Shown here one piece after another: positions 2,927 through 44,703 of a stretch of 64,000 bases of DNA. The stretch comes from Piromyces finnis finn (lineage: Eukaryota > Fungi > Neocallimastigomycota), in NCBI GenBank assembly GCA_002104945.1, contig MCFH01000037.1, positions 124,001-188,000 on the forward strand. The letters run 5' to 3'. Positions within the stretch are counted from its first letter, which is position 1; each line of letters starts with the position of its first letter. Under the pieces are notes generated by a model that worked only from the letters and a program-made list of their open reading frames with translations, ran no database searches and was not told the DNA's origin. A program made the translations under genes and the position numbers.

Positions 2927-5900
2927 ATGCTATTTTATCAACTAAAAGTGTTAATCTGGAGAAACTTACTATTGAAAAAGAGAAGACTCTTTTCAACATT
3001 ACTTGAAATTATTATTCCAATAATAATTTCTCTTGTAATTGGTACAGTGTATATTAAAATAAAAATTAGTTACAATGTTAAAAATATTAATATTAATAAG
3101 TTTATTAATAATATACTTTAATTTTTTTTTTGGTTATTATTCTAAAACTGATTATAAAGATACATACTTTGAAAAGATAGAAAATTTTAAATTAGAAAAC
3201 TTGGAAACTTATTCTGATGGTAGTTTGTTATATAAAGTAGAATTTGGTTTTATATTCCCTCCAGAATTTGATAATCAAAAGCGACAAATATTTTTAAATA
3301 ATTTTAAATCAAATAAATTTTTTGATAAATTTAATTATCTTGAAAATAATCAAAACTTCACACTTGATAACGAAAAGGTAAACAATGTTCATGAATATAA
3401 GATAAAAATCCTCGAAAATGAAGAAGAATCCGAAAAAGAATTAAAAAAAAGTGAAAAAGAATATTTTATTTACTATTCTGTTATTTTTACTTCATTAATA
3501 AAGTATACAATTGGTGTATATTACATGGAAGAATTATATGAAAAAATTAAAAATGTAGAATTTAACTATATTATGGATAATGAGTATTTTGATGAATTTG
3601 AATATGTTAGTAAATATCAAACAATCATAAATAAATCTATAATAAAAATGTTATCTCCTAATAGTCAAGATTTCAGTATCAGTTATACATTATTAGATAG
3701 AAATTCCTATACTGAAAAAACAAAAGAAAATACAATTCAATCTTTCGTACCACTTTTTATGCTTTTCTATTTTATTCCATGTATATGCAATTTACTCGTT
3801 TTATTAGTTATAGAAAAAGAAACCAAAATTAAAGAATCATTAGTTATTATTGGTTTGAAAAAATCGTCTTTCTGGGTTTCATGGGCTATAACATATGGAA
3901 TTATTATTTTGTTTACCTCTATAATTGTAACAGCAGTAATGATATTTTCTGAATTATTTGTTTATATTCATTGGAGTGTATTAATCATTTCAATCGTAAT
4001 TTTTGGTTTATCATGTTGCTCAATTTCTTTCATTCTTTCAACTTTAATTAACAAATCAAGAACAGCGAATACCATTGGTGCTATGGTTATTGCTTTATTC
4101 TTTGCAATGTTCTTTATAGATATGTTTATGAAAAAATATTTAACATTATATAATGTTTTACAGTATATTATTTCACCAATATCATTTCTTTCGTTATTTG
4201 ATTATCTTATTAAATATGACGAACAGAGAATAAACGTTAATCTTTTTAACATATTCAATAAATTAGGCTTAAAAAACAGTTTCTTAGGATTAATCTTTAC
4301 ATTTGTTTTCTATTTAATCATTGCTATTTATTTGGATAATGTAATACCTCAAGGTAATAATTTCTACAAAAAGTGGAACTTTTTCATTACTGATATTTTC
4401 AAAAACAAAAAACATAAATTATTAGATCCATGCCATAAAAATACTAACAATCAATATATTCAAGAAGATCCAAAGGATTTAAAAAAAGCTGTCGAAATTA
4501 GAAATATATGTAAAACATTTAAAATTAAAGGGGAAAGAGTAGAAATTTTAAAAAACATTGATTTTAACGCATTTTATAATGAAATATTTGCAATTTTAGG
4601 GCACAATGGTGCAGGAAAGACTACTTTAATGAGTATTATGACAGGTATTCTCTCATCCACTAAAGGAGAGGTTTATTACGATGGTATTCCTATTACCGGC
4701 AATGAAACAGAAATATGTAAAAAATTGGTTATTGTCCTCAATTTGATACCTTTAATAACAACTTAACTGTTGGTGAACATATTAAACTTTTTAGTGGTAT
4801 TAAAGGAATTAATGTTGATATTGATTCTATTCTTCAAGATATTGATTTATCAAATAAAAAGAATAATTACCCAAAAGAACTTAGTGGAGGACAAAGAAGA
4901 AAACTTTGTATTACATTAGCTCTTTTAGGATCTCCCAAATATGTATTCTTAGATGAACCTACTACAGGACTTGATCCATATTCTCGTAAAAATATTTGGG
5001 AATTATTATCAAGAAAAAAAGAAGATTGTGTCATCTTTGTTACTACTCATTATATGGATGAAGCTGATCTTTTAGCAGATAGAAAAATGATTATTTCTAA
5101 CGGTAATATTTCATGCCTAGGTACTAGTCTTTTCTTGAAACAGAAATTTAATATGAATTACTCACTTGATATTCATTGTGAGAATACAAAAGACTTTTCT
5201 ATTTCTGATAAAATTATGGATGAATTTTGTCCAGGAACAACTAATACAAGAACTATCAGCAATACTAATATGCAAAGCATAGATGATAACATTAGCAAAT
5301 CTGGAAAAGAAAATGGAGATTACATCATTTCATATTCTTTACCAATGAAATATGTTAAAAACTTTAAGCATATTTTTGAAAATATAAATAAAATAATAAA
5401 AGACCATCATAATTCAATTAAAAAATTTTCATTAACAGCTCCTACACTTGAAGAACTTTTTATTAAATTGGAACATAATGACGAAAATAGTCTTCAATAT
5501 CAAAAAGCAAAAAAATACAGTCAGTATTGATCTAAATTCAGATGATATTAAATTAATAGAAAAGCTTGATCCAATATTTAGCAAAAAATTAGTTAACAAG
5601 TCAACATCTTTCCGACAAATAATGGCTATTGTAAAACTTCGTTTAAAAATATTCTTAAGAAATAAATCGTTTGCCTTTATTTATACTTTATTACCGGTTG
5701 CTCTTTCTATTATTTGTATTTATTTAGTTAATTCATTATATTTACGTTTGCAATCGAATGAGCCTACAATTTTCCAATCATTAAACATTTCTAATTCGCT
5801 ATATGAAAACGAGAAATGGTTTAAGGAAGCTAATATAACCAGTCCAGCATTAAATTACATTAATAAAATAGAGTCAGCTAATAAAATTAGTATTGATACT

Positions 5901-7449
5901 GTTAGTTACGCGAATGATATATCGATTTCTAATGGAAAAGATATTTCCAAATTAAATTATATTGGCGGATTTTATGGTTATTCAGAAAATCAAAATCTTC
6001 ATTTTATTATATATAAAAATATCACTGATACTTTTGCCACATCAATAGGCATTGATATTTTAAGTAATGCTATTCTAGAACAAAATAATAATAAAGATCG
6101 TTTTTCAATTAGCATACACCCATTAAATTTATATTATGATAATTATAATGAAAATGATAAGGATAATCTTTTCAATATTGCACCCGAGATGAGTAAAAGA
6201 GAAATGGAACCTATATTGATTACTGGTTTGTCTCTTTGTATATCTCTTTGTATTTCGATCTTTGGACCGTATGCTGTTAAAGAAAGAGAAGAAGGAATCA
6301 CTCATCAACTTTTTTTAAATGGCACTAAACGTATTAACTACTGGCTAGGTATTCTTATCAGTGATAGTATTTGTATTTTTGTTCCGATTTTGATAATTAC
6401 ATTTGCAGGATATATAAATAATATTAGTATCTTCCATCCAAATATTATAATATTTACATTAGTAATGTCTGTTATGTGGATTGTTGGTAGTTTACTAAAT
6501 CAATATGTTATATCCTATTTCTTTAATAGATATGAAAAAATTTCTACTATTTTTGTTATCATTAATCCTATTCTTAGTCTTTTTGTAGGTACAATCATGA
6601 TCACCTTGGCAGCTAGATCCCATTTAGTTTTTATGGATGACATTGACCAAGTTACTGATGGAAGGGAACTAAAAAAGATAAGAAAAGATAAAATGATGCT
6701 TTATGGAATGTATGCTTTCTTATTTCTTTTTGTCCCTGGCTTTATTATTCTCTATTATGGAAAAATAGATACTTTCCAACTCCATAAAATTATCGAATTT
6801 TCCAAAGAAGAACTTGATGCATTTTTACTTTCTGATGAGGCTAAATCTATTAATTCCAATGATAAGCTCACCAATACTGAAAAATCAAAACTTCTTAAAC
6901 AGAAATTCTTTGATAAAAGAATTCCTACTCTTAAAGATTTATTTAGTTGTAAAGATAGATTTATTATATTAGTTTTATTTGCAATTGCAAGTATTATTAT
7001 ATACGGAATACTTTTAGTAATTATAGAAAAGATAAAGAAAAAGCAATTACATAAACATATTGAATACTCACAAGATGAAATAAGTAAAAAGGAAGAATTT
7101 ATGAAGAATGAACCGATTGATGTTAGAAATGAATTCAAAAGAGTTCGTCAATCTTTAAATGATAGAAATGCTAATATTTCATTAAATGTATTTCAACTAA
7201 ATAAAGATTTCATAATAAAACATAAAGATATTAAAAAGAAAAGAAAAGATGAAAGTATAAATAAGATCGATTCTGGAGATGGAATAGAAGACAAAGCAAT
7301 TAAAAATAAAAAAAATTTAAAAATGAAAAATAAAAGGGCTTTTGAAAAAATGGATAATCGTATAACTTATGATGAAAAGAAAAAAAAGTATATTAATCGT
7401 ATTGTAGATGATGTTACATTTGGTGTAAATATAAAAGAGTGTCTTGGTC

Positions 7450-7480
<31 letters not shown>

Positions 7481-8270
7481 CTCTATTTCTATGATTACTG
7501 GTTTATTAGCTCACACTCATGGAGTTATTAAATATGGTGAAAAAGATTTCAATAAAACGGATATTGCTGATTTATCACTAGGATATTGTTCTCAGCATGA
7601 TTCTCTTTGGAAATTATTAACAGTAAAAGAAACGGTTAATTTCTACCTCAACATTTGTGGTTATTCTAGAAAAGACATTCCTCGTTACACTAAAGCATTA
7701 ATTGAATCTTGTGGTATTGAAAATCATGCCAATAAAAAAGTCTGTGAAATTAGTGGAGGTACCAAACGTAAACTTTCCTTAATCATTGCTATTTGTTCCT
7801 CACCAGATTATCTTATTTTAGATGAACCAAGTGCAGGTATGGATCCATTTACACGTCGTTATATGTGGAATTTAATTTCTAAATTAAAAAATGGTCGTGA
7901 AACTGTTACGATTTTAACTACTCACTCTACAGAAGAAGCAGAAGCTCTTTGTGACCGTATTGCAATTTTAATTAAAGGACGTTTAGTTTGTATTGATACG
8001 CCAAGAAGTATTAGAATGAATTATAATAATACCTATACCTTGGAAGTATTTACCTCTGATCCGGAAAGATTTGAAGAAAGTTTTGTAAAAGAGAAAAATT
8101 TATTTGGGTTAGATGAAAATGAAAATTATGAAGTAGAATCATCCATTAATTATCAAAAATATTCTGTTAAAATAAAAATAGAGAATATTGCTAGAGTATT
8201 TTCTTTAATGGAAGATGCTAAAGAACAAAAATGTGTTAATCAATATAACTTTGGTCAATACTCTCCATAA
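2927..8270 (+). pseudogene. ABC transporter subfamily A (full size, TMD-NBD-TMD-NBD), disrupted as given: frameshifts at 4719-4724 and 5509-5515, and C-terminus cut by a LINE insertion
   Basis: N-terminal QLKVLIWRNLLLKKR...LLEIIIP; EKETKIKESL..IGL; Walker A GHNGAGKT and GPNGAGKT; signatures LSGGQRRKL (read in the shifted frame at ~4880) and ISGGTKRKL; FLDEPTTGLDP/ILDEPSAGMDP; TTHYMDEAD/TTHSTEEAE. Probable short intron 3049-3100. The frameshifts may be sequencing errors. Confidence 0.9.
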
Positions 8271-9280
8271 ATTTGTTGATCCAGTTTGTCCTAACTACTG
8301 TCCATGTTGCAAGTGTGGTGTTCAAAGTATTAAACATTGGTTATTAGATTGTCCAACATTTAGAGATATCCGTATTAAACATTATGATTCTATAGTCCAG
8401 CTACTATATTTTTCAGTCAACGTAATTCCAATAGTCCTATCAATAATAATGAAAATGTTAATATCAGTAGAGATAGCAATAACATTAATAGTAATAGTAA
8501 CAATAGTAATAGTAACAATAGTAATAGTAACAATAGTAATAGTAACAATAGTAATAATAGAAATAGTAATAATAACAATAGTAGTTATAGAAATAATAAT
8601 ACTAGTAATGATAGCAATAGTGAAGATAATAATTCTAATTTAGATAGTAATTTAGTTAATAATAGTAATAGTTCTAATAATCCGGTGAATATTAATGTGT
8701 ACGATTATTCTAGTGTGTGCAGTAAAATATTTAAATTCCTTCTTGGGGGAAGAAGTTTTAACAATATTAATTACAATTCAAGGGAATGGAAAGAACTTTG
8801 TAAGCGTCAGATTCAATCTGGTACTAACGAAGGAACACCATTCTTGACGGTAACCGCGGAACTTCTAACCAAAATCATGCCTTTTGCTATTGGCCAGCAA
8901 TGGTCAATGTTCAAAAGGTTTGAAGCAACATCCAAGAGCGTCAATGCTGAAGAAACAGTAAGACAGGCCAGGAGGGCCAGCGCAACCAATGGAGATCATA
9001 ATTTTGTTCCATGACAAAATTTTGATCTTTGGCTCGGTGTCCCATTGGAAGTCAAATACAATTATTATACTTTAGTATGATAGTGGCTTTCTTACTTTAA
9101 TTAAAATTACTAGAATACATTATACCCAATTTTTATTCATTTGTGTTTATTTAAACATATTTTTTTTATTTTTATTTTTGTTTTTTAATTTTTTATTACA
9201 TGTATTATAATTTTAATTAAATTAATAATAAAGTTTAAAATATTTGATGCCGTTAAAAAAAAAAAAAAAAAAAAAAAAAA
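8268..9280 (+). mobile_element. 5'-truncated LINE (non-LTR retrotransposon) copy, ~1.0 kb, with A26 tail
   Basis: Highly similar to the reverse complement of 23500-24422: encodes the CPNYCPCCKCGVQSIKHWLLDC zinc knuckle and the same 3' UTR ending TATTTGATGCCGTT(A)26. It has a 1-nt deletion near 8410. No TSD found. Confidence 0.95.
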
Positions 9281-10022
9281 TAATAAAAATGAAAAAAAAA
9301 AAAAAAAAAAAATAGTAATATGAAATTCACTTTAAAAAAAATTATTATAATGTTTTTTATTATTAAAATTAAAATTGATATGTATTATATAAATATTTAA
9401 TTAAAATTTTCATTTATATTTTATTAATAATTTAATTATTATTTTCTTTTTTTAAATAAAAAAAAAAAAAGTATAAAATATGGAAAATGAATACTTTATG
9501 ACACTATAGTAGTTAAAATATTTAATTTCTTTATAAAGTTTTAATTAAGATTACCTTTAGAAATTTTTAAAATATACTCCATGCAAATCTTTTTTATAAT
9601 AAAAATGTTCCATTATATCAAAGATTAACGGATAAAATAATAATTAAACTTTTAAAATTCAAATTTATGACATACAGTGTATTATAGAAAAAAATGCTTA
9701 AAATTTTAAATTAATTTATATAACATTTAATTAAGTTACAATGTTTAAAATAATTAAACCTTAAATTTCTATCTTTTATAAAACAAAAGCAAGCATGCAA
9801 GCAATTACTCATACTTTTTGATAAATAAAAATAAAGTTAAAAAATATGAAAAAATCATTGCTAAGCTAAATTTATTATAGTAATGACAATGTCAAATAAT
9901 TAAAAATTAAAGCATTTTAATATTGAAATTTAAGTTTTAATATTAATAAAATATATATGGAATAAGACTAAAAAAAAATGGATATCTATAATGTGTAGTA
10001 TAAAAATATTTTTCATCCATAA

Positions 10023-17384: not shown

Positions 17385-20330
<2,946 letters not shown>

Positions 20331-20514: not shown

Positions 20515-22570
<2,056 letters not shown>

Positions 22571-22778
22571 ATTATCATATTTAAGTTAATAGCTAATTAA
22601 AAAATAAAAATTTCAGTCTATATAAACTAAAAAAAATGGTATAATATTATAAACATTTAATTTTACTTATATTAAAAATGGACATACTTATTGTATATTG
22701 GTCATTATTATATATAATGTATAATTAAGATTAAAAACTAAATAAAGCATTTAAAATCATTGTATTAAAAAAAAAAAA

Positions 22779-23330
22779 GTAAGAAAGCCACTATTATACT
22801 AAAGATAAAAATTTTGTCATGTATCCTACTGTTTCTTCAGCACTGACGCTTTTGGTTGTTGCTTCAAACCTTTTGAACATTGACCATTGCTGACCAATAA
22901 CAAAAAGCATAATTTTGGTTAGGGGTTCCGCTGTTACCATTAAGAATAGTGTTCTTTCGTAAGTGCCCAATTGAATCTGACACTTGTAAAGTTCTTTCCA
23001 TTCCCTTGAACTGTAATTGATATTGTTAAAACTTCTTCCCCCAAGAAGGAATTTAAATATCTGCACACACTATAATAATCATACACATTAATATTCACCG
23101 GATTATTAGAACTATTATTATTATTAACTAAATTACTATCTAAATTAGAATTAGTATCCTCACTATTGCTATCATTACTAATATTGTTATTTCTACTACT
23201 ACTATTGTTATTATTACTATTGTTACTATTACTATTACTATTGTAATAGTAACAATAACCAGTAGAGGCCATAGGCAAATTCTTGGTACTCATAACACAA
23301 TTTAATAAAATTTTTAGTTTCAATAAATAT
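22779..23330 (-). mobile_element. Degenerate, internally deleted relic of the same LINE family
   Basis: Matches 23651-24545 in blocks (AAGTAAGAAAGCCACTAT..., CTACTGTTTCTTCAGC..., KFLLGGRSFNNINY, Asn-rich tract, AATAACCAGTAGAGGCCATAGGC) with several deletions and substitutions. Confidence 0.9.
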
Positions 23331-23361: not shown

Positions 23362-23435
23362 TTTGGTACAATGTTTTTTTTTTTTTTTTTTTTTTTTTTT
23401 AATGGCATCAAATATTTTTAAATTTGGTACAATGT
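23362..23435 (-). mobile_element. Micro retro-insertion: 22 nt of LINE 3' end plus A27, flanked by the 13-bp TSD TTTGGTACAATGT
   Basis: TSD at 23362-23374 and 23423-23435. Insert T-run + AATGGCATCAAATATTTTTAAA matches the LINE terminus AACGGCATCAAATATTTTAAA (23500-23520). Confidence 0.85.
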
Positions 23436-23475
23436 ATACTTTAACTTTAATTTTTTAAGTTTAAAGTTTTTTGAT

Positions 23476-26400
23476 TTTTTTTTTTTTTTTTTTTTTTTTA
23501 ACGGCATCAAATATTTTAAACTTTATTATTAATTTAATTAAAATTATAATACATTTAACATAAAAAATTAAAAATAAAAATAAAAAAAATATGTTTAAAT
23601 AAACACAAATGAATAAAAATTGGGTATAATGTATTCTAGTAATTTTAATTAAAGTAAGAAAGCTACTATCATACTAAAGTATAATAATTGTATTTGACTT
23701 CCAATGGGACACCGAGCCAAAGATCAAAATTTTGTCATGGAACAAAATTATGATCTCCATTGGTTGCGCTGGCCCTCCTGGCCTGTCTTACTGTTTCTTC
23801 AGCATTGACGCTCTTGGATGTTGCTTCAAACCTTTTGAACATTGACCATTGCTGGCCAATAGCAAAAGACATGATTTTGATTAGAAGTTCCGCGGTTACC
23901 GTCAAGAATGGTGTTCCTTCATTAGTACCAGATTGAATCTGACGCATACAAAGTTCTTTCCATTCCCTTGAATTGTAATTAATATTGTTAAAACTTCTTC
24001 CCCCAAGAAGGAATTTAAATATTTTACTGCACACACTATAATAATCATACACATTAATATTCACCGGATTATTAGAACTATTACTATCATTAACTAAATT
24101 ACTATCTAAATTAGAATTATTATCTTCACTATTGTTATCATTACTAATATTATTATTTCTATTACTACTATTGTTATTATTACTATTGTTACTATTACTA
24201 TTAATGTTATTGCTATCTCTACTGATATTAACATTTTCATTATTATTGATAGGACTATTGGAATTACGTTGACTGAAAAAATTTAATAGATGGACTATGG
24301 AATCATAATGTTTAATATGGATATCTCTAAATGTTGGACAATCTAATAACCAATGTTTAATACTTTGAACACCACACTTGCAACATGGACAGTAGTTAGG
24401 ACAAACTGGATCAACAAATTTAGCAGCTTTGGCAACTCTAGCATCCAACTTGTATCCGCTTCTTGCCTTCAATAACCAGTAGAAGCCATAGGCAAACTCT
24501 GGGTACTCATAACATAATTTAATAAAATCTTTAGTTTCAATAAATTTATTATCATCATAATATTGCGCTTTGATTGAATTCCTTTTGAGATCTTTCCAAT
24601 AAAAGTTTTTAATTGCTTTAATATCTCCATGCTTCTTTAGTTTTTTATCAAGTGTCCTACTTGATTTGCACCACGTGTATTTTCTAAATTTAGGAATGTA
24701 ATTGACAAGGTGTGAGATAATACAATTTGAGTTTTTCCATTTGTTAAAACATCTAACCTGAGCTAACGCACATTTGGCTGACAATGGAGGAATATTCAAA
24801 TCTTTTGAGATAGAGTATAAAGATATAAACGATACAGCTTTATGAACTCCGGCAACCCATCGTATTCCTTTGTTAACATGCTTCTGATCAATCCTAGACC
24901 TAGCTTTGTTGGATCCAAGTAATGGTGCAAAGTATGAAACTCTGCTGATTACTTGTGAGTTAAGTACTAGTTTTTTGAAAGGAATAGGAATATTAGGATT
25001 TCTTAAGAATTTACTGACTGAGAAAAGTCCTTTCAAAACCCTGTTATTAAGAGCTTTAATTACTGGTTTAAGGGACAAATTCTTATCAAATGGAACACCA
25101 AGATAAGTATAGCAATCAGTAGTTGGAATGGGTTTTCCTGCTAAGTAAAATGTTGGATCTCTCTTGTTCTGATTTTCTATTGATTCAGGACGAATCACCA
25201 TCGTTGAACATTTCTGGATACCAAATTCCATTTCATTATACAATGCCCATTCATTAACTCTTCTAAGCATCTTTTTTAAGCATCCTCTCTTGTTGGAGCA
25301 CAAATAACTATATCATCTGCAAAAAGTCCACCACAGCATCGAGTGTCACCTAAACTGACTCCGAGATCTTCGCATTCTTTAAAAATATCATTAATAAAGA
25401 GATTAAAGAGAATAGGAGAAAGTGGGCAACCTTGACGGACTCCTTTCTTCACATCAAAAGATTTCGAAAATTGACCATCTAATTTGACATTAGCCTTAGA
25501 TGTTAAATATAAATTTTTGATAAATTGTAAACTCTTACCTCGGATTCCTAAACAATCTAATTTATGGAGAATATTACCGATTGGGACTGAATTATATGCT
25601 TTCCTGAGATCTAAAAAGGCCAAATATGTCTCTTTATTATCTAATTGACGTCTACGGCATATTTCTTGGATTGAAATGAAAAGACTAATACTTTCTTCCT
25701 TTTTTCGAAAACCAAATTGTTCAGGTCTAATGAAATTATTCTTTAGACCATATTCTGAGATTCTAGTGGCGACAATTTTGGAAATCAACTTAATACCATT
25801 ATTGATTAGTGATATACCTCGATAGTTATCACAATTTGTCAAATCTCCCTTCTTAGGAATAGAAACAATACTGGATTCATTCCATGAGTTGGGGAAATCT
25901 CCATCCCAAATACGGTTGAATAATTTAAGAATAAAATTTAAACCATGAGCATCATTATCTGAAGTAGTATTACCAGAAGAATTATTATCTGTAGCATTAT
26001 TAGAATCATTACTTGATGGAATTAATGCTTTGTAAAATTCAATTGGAATACCATCCGGACCTGATGCTTTATAATTTGGAGTAGAGAGGATAGCTGACTT
26101 GACTTCATCAATACTAATATCTTGATTGATATCCCATTCATCAAGCATAGGAAGTGAAAAACGTTTATTCGTTGGTTCTTCATACCAATGCTCCAAATCA
26201 AGACTTACACCACTTGGATCTGATGCAAGATTTTCGAAATGATCATGCCACACTTCTAGCTGTTCTTCTGTAGCAACAACTAATTCTCCATTTTTGTTTT
26301 TAATTGGTTGAGCAATAAAGAAAGAATCTTTTCCAATTTTTGCAGTTTTCTTGATCCATTTCCAGGCCTTCTTAGGATTATGACTCTTCATATACTCACA

Positions 26401-26741
26401 TCCTGTTTTAATCCAATGAAGATATTCTTGTTTCCTAAATTCATTACATCTTTTGTGGATGTAATCGATGAGCTTACGGTAGATTTTAATTCTTTTAATA
26501 AATTCATCTATATCATAAATTCTTTCTTTTTTAAATCTCTTATACAACTTCATTTTGATTTTTTGAAGATTAAAAATTTGTTGTGAAATATGAAATGAAG
26601 ACTTTATAACATTATTTGCTGAGGTAATACTGAGCTCGTCTGCAATTGAAAAAGCAGTTGAAGTAAACTCTTTGGAAAGTTCATCTGTAGAAACATTAGG
26701 ATCGTTGAATTTTGCTGAAAGTATTTGGAATTTATTATGAC
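23476..26741 (-). mobile_element. LINE (non-LTR retrotransposon), 3.27 kb, 5'-truncated, poly(A) tail, 14-bp TSD TAAAGTTTTTTGAT (23462-23475 and 26742-26755)
   Basis: RT motifs KASGPDGIP, IVSIPKKGD...NYRGISL, EQFGFR, AFLDLRKAY, KGVRQGCPLSPILFNLFI, FADD; C-terminal CCHC knuckle; T25 run at 23475-23499; the reading frame is open right up to the 5' truncation point. Confidence 0.97.
23735..26741 (-). pseudogene. LINE ORF2 (reverse transcriptase + zinc knuckle), lacking the N-terminal endonuclease region, with one frameshift at ~25285-25290
   Basis: ORFs 25276-26553 and 23735-25303 join if the (AG)n run after FADDIVICAPTR is shortened by 2 nt (PTRGCLKKMLRRVNEW). Confidence 0.9.
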
Positions 26742-43691: not shown

Positions 43692-43857
43692 TTTTAATTG
43701 TAAATATGTTGAAATTAGAATTATTGGGTTAACAAGCATTTTTATTAATGACTTCTTAATAAAATTATGGAATGAAATATCAAAAATTGCTAAAAATTTT
43801 TGAAAAACTTTAAAGATTTTCTAAAGTATAATTATTATTGGAATAGAATGAAAATTC

Positions 43858-44415
43858 GTCGTTCCAGTTTTTATCCTGGTTGTTAAGGCGTTTCCTTAGC
43901 ATATATAAGGCTTCTGGTTCGACCCCGCAGATGTCAGTGCCTGTGGATTTTCCCACTGGGTTTGCCATGGGTTGGGTTATGATATTCAGGTAAGTATAAA
44001 TGAACTTTCTAATTTACTACTATGATAATAACACTCGTCTAGCCGGCCTGAGAGGGTCTAGTGTACATGGTACATTCCAAATTAGAACTTAATAAGTGGT
44101 GACTTAGGCTATGCCAAAAACACATAATATTCCTTAATCAATTTAAGTGTAAACATTAGGGGGCGGTTGACACGTGATCAAATTGACTATAAGAGGCTTA
44201 GCATTGTAGTTGTGAAATATCGTACAACGACATGCATCTAATGTACATGGATTAAGTGAGCGTCGAAGCTGAAGAAACAGTATGACAGACCAGGAGGGTC
44301 ACAACCACCTAGCAATAGGAATGAGCCAACGTTTCTCTAAGAACCACCATTGGAGCTAACTCTGATCGATGGGAGAAATGCACTCGGAAGTTAAAAAAAA
44401 AAAAAAAAAAAAAAA
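43858..44415 (+). mobile_element. tRNA-derived SINE (~560 bp) with A23 tail, LINE-related 3' segment and 13-bp TSD AGAATGAAAATTC (43845-43857, 44415-44427)
   Basis: GC-richer island in AT-rich DNA; B box GGTTCGACCCC (43916-43926); A-box-like TGGTTGTTAAGG (43877-43888); TTAGCAT anticodon-loop-like heptamer (43896-43902); 39/44-nt match to the LINE 3' ORF end; poly(A); TSD. Confidence 0.88.
43877..43926 (+). promoter_or_regulatory. Internal RNA polymerase III type-2 promoter (A-box-like + B box) of the SINE head
   Basis: GGTTCGACCCC fits GGTTCGANNCC; the A box is degenerate; a T5 run at 43868-43872 may attenuate this copy. Confidence 0.7.
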
Positions 44416-44703
44416 GAATGAAAATTCATCGCTAATATCTTATTCTTTGTTGTGCCTTCTTCTTTATTATTTAGACGAGTACTAAAAAAAAAAATATTTA
44501 AAAATTTTAATATACAATATTTTTTTAAAAAAAAAAAATATCACTTTCTACAATAAAATTTTATGTATGACAAAAAAATAAATGGAAATATATTACAATA
44601 TATTGTAATTACATATTAAATAAAATTAATAACACATTAAAAATTAAAAAATGAAAAAAACGTGTTTTAAACGGTCAATTATATATTATTATTAACAATG
44701 ACT

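Follow-up and report, generated by a model that had tools for sequence, protein, structure and literature searches.

A structured RNA block of 44 nucleotides is common to a LINE and a SINE of the gut fungus Piromyces finnis, and it is probably the module by which the LINE captures its template, copied by the SINE for its own mobilisation. Comparison of LINE tails indicates that the two hairpins formed by the block are conserved as structure, through covariation, in independent LINE lineages, whereas recognition of the block by the LINE machinery is proposed by analogy with known SINE/LINE pairs. The window referred to below is the whole stretch of DNA that was analysed, 64,000 nucleotides of contig MCFH01000037.1 (positions 124,001 to 188,000, forward strand), with a G+C content of 12-31%. 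The features on which the argument depends are as follows.

8268-9280, plus strand: LINE copy 1, a 5'-truncated tail of ~1.0 kb, in 90% alignment with copy 2
8936-8979, plus strand: block in LINE copy 1, within the last ORF2 codons (model R1, 75 bits)
8940-8964 and 8966-8978, plus strand: hairpins 1 and 2 of LINE copy 1, with hairpin 2 stem GGCC/GGCC
22776-23300, minus strand: LINE copy 3, an older 5'-truncated tail, with a block remnant at 22815-22853 (27.6 bits)
23451-26553, minus strand: LINE copy 2, bearing the reverse transcriptase (RVT_1, E 1.4e-30)
43845-43857, plus strand: 5' copy of the 13-bp target-site duplication, AGAATGAAAATTC, read directly
43858-44414, plus strand: SINE copy, 19 nt short at its 5' end relative to the full-length element of 554 nt
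44258-44301, plus strand: block in the SINE, from RNAfold, covariation and model R1 (62 bits, E 7e-16)
44262-44286, plus strand: SINE hairpin 1, with a basal stem of 3 bp, an internal loop, an apical stem of 4 bp and a loop of 6 nt
44288-44300, plus strand: SINE hairpin 2, with stem GACC/GGUC and loop AGGAG
44415-44427, plus strand: 3' copy of the 13-bp target-site duplication, AGAATGAAAATTC, read directly

The LINE and the SINE of the window

The LINE is a non-LTR retrotransposon, with a reverse transcriptase ORF, A-tails, truncated copies and a 13-bp duplication around a copy of only 21 nt. In copy 2, the RVT_1 domain lies in an ORF at 25276-26553, and an uninterrupted ORF2 tail with a weak zf-RVT-like motif extends over 23735-25303; the block is found at 23770-23813 and a run of A25 at 23475-23499, all on the minus strand. 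Copy 1 encompasses the zinc-knuckle region of ORF2 (with a CPCCKC..H....C motif), an Asn-rich linker, a C-terminal domain ending in ..KSVNAEETVRQARRASATNGDHNFVP, an AT-rich 3' UTR and a run of A26 (9255-9280), and its 90% alignment with copy 2 pairs 8268-9303 with 24422-23451 of the minus strand. In the remnant carried by copy 3, hairpin 1 is retained and hairpin 2 has been lost through deletion. An endonuclease (Exo_endo_phos_2) was identified only in the related contig L046, upstream of the reverse transcriptase, the window copies being without the endonuclease part. Relatives of the ORF2 tail were recovered by protein search from Piromyces finnis, Piromyces sp. E2, Neocallimastix lanati, Anaeromyces robustus and gut metagenomes.

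The shortest copy lies at 23362-23434 on the minus strand, and consists of ~21 nt of the LINE 3' end plus A27, with a perfect 13-bp duplication, ACATTGTACCAAA, on either side. This copy shows the A-tail to be the starting point of reverse transcription, which can terminate almost immediately.

Immediately upstream of copy 1, at 3075-8270 on the plus strand, is a gene for an ABCA-type ABC transporter, with two halves that each match ABC2_membrane_3 and ABC_tran in Pfam. The long ORFs upstream of position 8268 had been candidates for LINE ORFs and were rejected on the basis of these Pfam matches; the reverse possibility, that the LINE tail is a pseudogene fragment of the transporter, was rejected on the basis of the zinc-knuckle motif and the reverse transcriptase ORF, which mark a true LINE. 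The reading frame of the transporter ends at a TAA (8268-8270) exactly at the junction with the LINE tail, and the insertion may have clipped or replaced the native end of the gene. Elsewhere on the minus strand, a pair of near-identical ORFs of ~380 aa each (17392-18531 and 20522-21664), lying ~3.1 kb apart, represents a recent tandem duplication, and long (TTA)n/(TTG)n arrays (18486-18977 and 21610-22011) are found one beside each ORF.

The SINE has a tRNA-like head, followed by a body and the block; beyond the block are an unrelated tail of 91 nt and an A-run at 44393-44414/15. It is 99.8% identical to L001:10852-11384, in a contig of the P. finnis assembly where the SINE copy is full-length at 554 nt and sits in another LINE tail with its own target-site duplication. 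The resemblance of the head to a tRNA was recognised by eye, from a B-box-like GGTTCGACCCC at 43918-43928 and an anticodon-arm-like stretch; ARAGORN found no tRNA in the window or in the full-length SINE copy, and Rfam returned no match in the window at gathering score and none in 43700-44700 at E up to 10. The head region also contains a T5 run (43868-43872) and a T4 run (43948-43951). Runs of T of such length are Pol III terminators in many organisms, yet RNA contigs span the whole element.

Those RNA contigs, from one RNA library, cover the exact span of the SINE at a word depth of 2e4-2.7e5, with none in the flanks, and in the same library the LINE contigs enter the block from the LINE's own upstream sequence. 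One further RNA contig of 270 nt (run X3) joins position 43953 to 44236, skipping 282 nt of the SINE body; it retains the head and the block plus tail, with ~12% differences, and probably represents a second, shorter SINE family that has kept the hairpin module. Within the sequencing runs the SINE family is nearly invariant, the sole difference at the 5% reporting threshold being position 43904, which is T in the window SINE and C in the L001 copy and in the RNA contigs of all four runs (96% of depth in X3). The T at this position looks like a private substitution of the window copy. Both the LINE and the SINE are real elements, and both have been recently active.

Extent, fold and covariation of the shared block

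The sequence-only reading of this DNA had reported two 44-nt strings, one in the LINE (8936-8979) and one in the SINE (44258-44301), and both lie exactly where they were reported, with 39 of 44 positions identical and differences at block positions 8, 10, 26, 32 and 42. A BLAST comparison inside the window aligns SINE positions 44258-44307 with 8936-8988 (85% over 53 columns, E 1e-10) and also with 23813-23761 on the minus strand, the weak similarity beyond the SINE block continuing to 44307. The block of LINE copy 2 is an identical copy of that at 8936-8979, and the decayed block on the minus strand at 22815-22853 is the fourth occurrence of a 21-nt core that is found four times in the window and in none of 100 shuffles. 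In the LINE, the block encodes ..KSVNAEETVRQARRA.. and lies 11 codons (~30 nt) upstream of the ORF2 stop codon at 9012-9014. That it sits within the final part of ORF2 and not at the 3' terminus of the element, as originally described, is borne out by the distance from the end of the block to the A-run, which is 275 nt in the LINE and 91 nt in the SINE.

Homology between the two elements had also been said to be confined to the block, and this agrees with a BLAST search of the full SINE against all fetched loci, in which LINE matches occur only at SINE positions 420-469. The SINE tail that follows the block (89 nt) aligns with nine LINE 3' regions no better than shuffled sequences do, and an extended homology after the block, including a GGAAGT motif that had been seen by eye, was rejected on this ground. 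Outside of LINE tails, a search with model R1 over 183 kb of Piromyces sp. E2, N. lanati and P. finnis loci found the block only in the P. finnis SINE. A pattern scan gave 0 hits in viral contigs; a pattern scan of metagenomes gave 38 loci, of which ~14 are true LINE tails; the others match by chance and lie in bacterial-type contigs, and no SINE is among the 38.

Among the LINEs themselves, nucleotide conservation runs past hairpin 2, through 8980-9005 of copy 1 and the same region of L002, L003, L042 and L043 (GCAACCAAU ... GAUCAUAAUUU). The SINE shares only CAACCA of this stretch, which may represent a further, LINE-specific RNA signal.

Both of the hairpins that had been proposed are formed by RNAfold in the LINE and the SINE 44-mers. 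For the LINE, the predicted energy is -13.7 kcal/mol (z -3.0, matched by 0 of 200 shuffles), and for the SINE it is -11.3 kcal/mol (z -1.95, matched by 10 of 200), with folds of 76-nt contexts being no better than those of shuffles. The in silico probability of the hairpins is 0.5-1.0 in most contexts, and 0.03-0.48 when the whole SINE of 540-570 nt is folded.

The fold was examined in LINE tails from Piromyces, Neocallimastix and gut metagenomes, 18 of them distinct, which were collected by two routes. The protein route, in which protein hits were traced to their encoding contigs (L001-L003 and L042-L050), is unbiased with respect to the block. The pattern route was a metagenome scan that held the apical stem of hairpin 1 and GACAG fixed; because of this, the seven non-P. 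finnis sequences that it contributed to alignment A2 (L005, L008, L011, L013, L025, L041 and the L002 type, the last recovered by the protein route as well) could not vary at those positions. In the main lineage, with 13 distinct sequences including the SINE, 96.5% of cells pair, compared with 92.8 +/- 0.9% in shuffles (0 of 500 reach this value), and two-sided changes, which touch three of the 11 pairs, number six cells against 1.3 expected (0 of 500 shuffles). Slid 3' partners, used as a control, pair in 11-39% of cells, and RNAalifold returned the same two hairpins unprompted.

Variation is most evident in hairpin 2, the stem of which occurs as GGCC/GGCC, GACC/GGUC, GGUC/GAUC and GGAC/GUCC, and with wobble pairs as GGUU/GGCC and GGCC/GGCU; L011, L044 and L041 each have a single broken pair. 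In hairpin 1, the loop varies freely among six versions and the middle pair of the basal stem is U-A, C-G or U-G, while the GAGCG directly 5' of the hairpin is invariant save in L041. In a distant LINE lineage (n=5), the apical stem is GUCG/CGAU instead of GCUG/CAGU and closes a loop of 3 nt; the place of hairpin 2 is taken by a hairpin whose sequence is unrelated. MAFFT put the gap of this lineage outside the loop, and hairpin 1 was therefore counted on a hand alignment, in which 98 of 98 cells pair over both lineages and three of the seven pairs have changed on both sides. On that alignment, the covariation of the apical stem represents one evolutionary split between the two lineages.

The five differences between SINE and LINE preserve all 11 pairs and include one compensatory pair. 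This pair, GACC/GGUC in place of GGCC/GGCC, had been singled out by the sequence-only reading; it is present, and is one among several in independent LINE lineages, the GACC/GGUC stem itself being found in one LINE subfamily as well as in the SINE. The expectation of covariation among copies held for the LINE lineages and not for the SINE family, which is nearly invariant and gives no signal of its own; the SINE adds a single data point, because only one SINE sequence was available, from a young and nearly invariant family. Taken from the alignments, the evidence indicates that both hairpins are structures conserved by covariation in independent LINE lineages.

One metagenome contig, L041, carries two LINE tails of different lineages back to back (1060-1330 and 1330-1600). 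The reading frame of the second tail stops at a TGA within hairpin 1, which would place part of the module in the 3' UTR for that lineage, or for that copy.

The overlap with ORF2 raises the matter of coding constraint. Within the block, six unbiased LINE tails have a third-codon identity of 0.77, or 0.87 when the codons of the loop, which vary freely, are left out, as compared with 0.55 in the 67 upstream codons (Mann-Whitney p 0.003 and 9e-5). In the seven codons after the block, up to the DH codons, it is 0.87. The two arms of hairpin 2 are two codons, and swaps of the stem alter both amino acids, giving Ala..Ala, Thr..Val, Val..Ile or Asp..Ser; because both amino acids change together, RNA pairing prevails over the peptide in this hairpin. 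A second protein search, with a 109-aa tail, gave seven proteins, all with the common A..A stem codons.

A putative template-capture module

The block is best explained as an RNA module, structured and conserved, that belongs to an APE-type LINE family with poly(A) ends in the Neocallimastigomycota, the anaerobic gut fungi. It comprises GAGCG, which is single-stranded and invariant, then a bipartite hairpin, in which 3 bp and 4 bp are separated by an internal loop and capped by a variable loop, and, one base on, a short hairpin. In the LINE it is superimposed on the final ~15-25 codons of ORF2, whereas the SINE of P. finnis has a copy of the module alone, set between an unrelated body and the unrelated 91-nt tail. 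The module is proposed to be the site where the LINE machinery, either the ORF2 protein or its RNP, captures its template, such that the SINE would be mobilised in trans by presenting the same module together with a poly(A) tail for priming. Because the block is internal and not a 3' end, priming cannot start at the block itself.

This proposal draws on systems in which SINE/LINE partners, poly(A)-ending L1 lineages among them, are recognisable by a stem-loop that they share and that carries compensatory changes (PMC3472496), and in which the ORF2 protein binds the shared stem-loops (PMC4176376; see also PMC1636434). From these pairs we infer that the LINE protein or its reverse transcriptase would recognise the block, and by the same analogy such candidate binding would be required for mobilisation. 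Overall, we consider it probable that the block is a template-capture module of the LINE that the SINE has copied.

A more elaborate form of the mechanism, to which we would assign only a small chance, is that the block is a dual-coding device for cis-preference. Since the block occupies the last codons of ORF2, a freshly synthesised ORF2 protein would encounter it, at the close of translation, in the very mRNA that encodes the protein, and would load at that point; priming would follow on the poly(A), a long way downstream. The SINE would then mimic an internal loading site rather than a 3' end. Such a geometry of recognition, if true, would be unlike both the stringent type (a 3'-terminal stem-loop) and the relaxed type (poly(A) only).

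It is also conceivable, although we regard it as unlikely, that the hairpins are real but serve another role, such as the binding of a host or ORF1-type protein that influences RNA stability, export or localisation, or the pausing of ribosomes near the ORF2 stop codon, with the SINE keeping the element for that benefit. A position 30 nt upstream of the stop codon, away from the priming site, is consistent with this explanation, as is the continued conservation of the LINE past hairpin 2 to the DH codons, most of which is absent from the SINE, and the extreme abundance of SINE RNA in the RNA library could be explained by a stabilising element. A function linked to the ribosome, however, is inapplicable to a SINE that is non-coding, and partner recognition predicts just what is observed, namely a LINE-dependent element in which nothing but the block derives from the LINE.

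Doubtful, in our estimation, is the alternative that the SINE block is a functionless relic of a chimeric birth, left by a template switch onto LINE RNA, in which case poly(A) would suffice for mobilisation, as it does for L1/Alu, and the structure would be real in the LINE and irrelevant to the SINE. A poly(A) end is indeed common to both elements, and the youth of the SINE family means that an unselected 44-nt relic could survive with five changes; when five substitutions were introduced at random, all 11 pairs were kept in 7-15% of trials. Retention of all pairs together with a two-sided compensatory change was seen in only 1-2% of trials, however, and the shorter form of the SINE that joins 43953 to 44236 drops 282 nt of the body yet keeps the block and tail. 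More generally, this one segment has been retained while everything else LINE-like has been lost, which speaks against a relic.

Conservation at the level of the C-terminal ORF2 peptide, with incidental hairpins, is very improbable and largely refuted: the peptide KSVNA..TVRQA.RA is indeed conserved among proteins that are 45-60% identical overall, but conservation at synonymous sites is higher in the block than in the codons upstream of it, paired codons swap amino acids in a complementary way, the non-coding SINE has stops in that frame and keeps the fold, and in the distant lineage the fold persists although the peptide differs.

Relation to known SINE/LINE partners

Partnership of a SINE and a LINE by means of a shared RNA hairpin is textbook knowledge in vertebrates and is known in plants. 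The stringent pairs, exemplified by eel UnaL2/UnaSINE1 and zebrafish ZfL2 (PMC1636434, PMC4176376), resemble the P. finnis pair in that a short segment of the SINE is LINE-derived and forms a hairpin with an internal loop, in that the stem is conserved by structure, and in that the SINE is inferred to depend on its partner LINE. The stringent pairs, however, share the very end of the 3' UTR, beyond which lie the short terminal repeats where reverse transcription starts. In P. finnis, by contrast, there are two hairpins, they lie in the coding sequence of ORF2, 275 nt (LINE) and 91 nt (SINE) before the poly(A), and the downstream sequences of the two elements are unrelated. Thus, of the features that characterise the stringent type, a homologous segment and a compensatory stem-loop were found, and a shared 3' end was not; because the shared part is internal, the P. 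finnis pair would be a variant that works like the stringent pairs.

The closest parallel in plants is that of LINE1-1_ZM with ZmSINE2/3 in maize and sorghum (Ohshima 2012, PMC3472496), where a poly(A)-ending LINE of the L1 clade shares with SINEs a segment of ~45-50 nt that is far better conserved than the rest and contains a compensatory hairpin. That segment is the last 45 nt of the LINE, whereas the P. finnis block is internal, doubles as codons and occurs in an early-diverging fungus. Human L1/Alu is similar in that both partners end in poly(A), in the 13-bp target-site duplications and in the extreme 5' truncation of LINE copies, but it has no common sequence module, whereas the P. finnis pair has a specific, structured module of 44 nt; the pair thus departs from the relaxed type, in which poly(A) alone is shared.

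Among fungi, the AfuSINE2 families of Aspergillus fumigatus (PMC5063351), a host of a different phylum, resemble the P. finnis SINE in being short, non-coding retroposons that have target-site duplications and a head related to tRNA. Within the literature that was searched, no paper on SINEs in the Neocallimastigomycota was found.

What is new in the P. finnis pair is a module that is internal, consists of two hairpins, overlaps the end of ORF2 and is shared by elements that both end in poly(A), such that the presumed recognition module is set apart from the poly(A) at which priming occurs. The pair opens to direct test the long-standing question of what a LINE protein recognises when its partnership is neither purely stringent nor purely relaxed. 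The module provides a compact RNA of 48 nt for binding and structural work, and it can serve as a marker when SINEs and the tails of LINEs are annotated in gut fungi, whose genomes are AT-rich.
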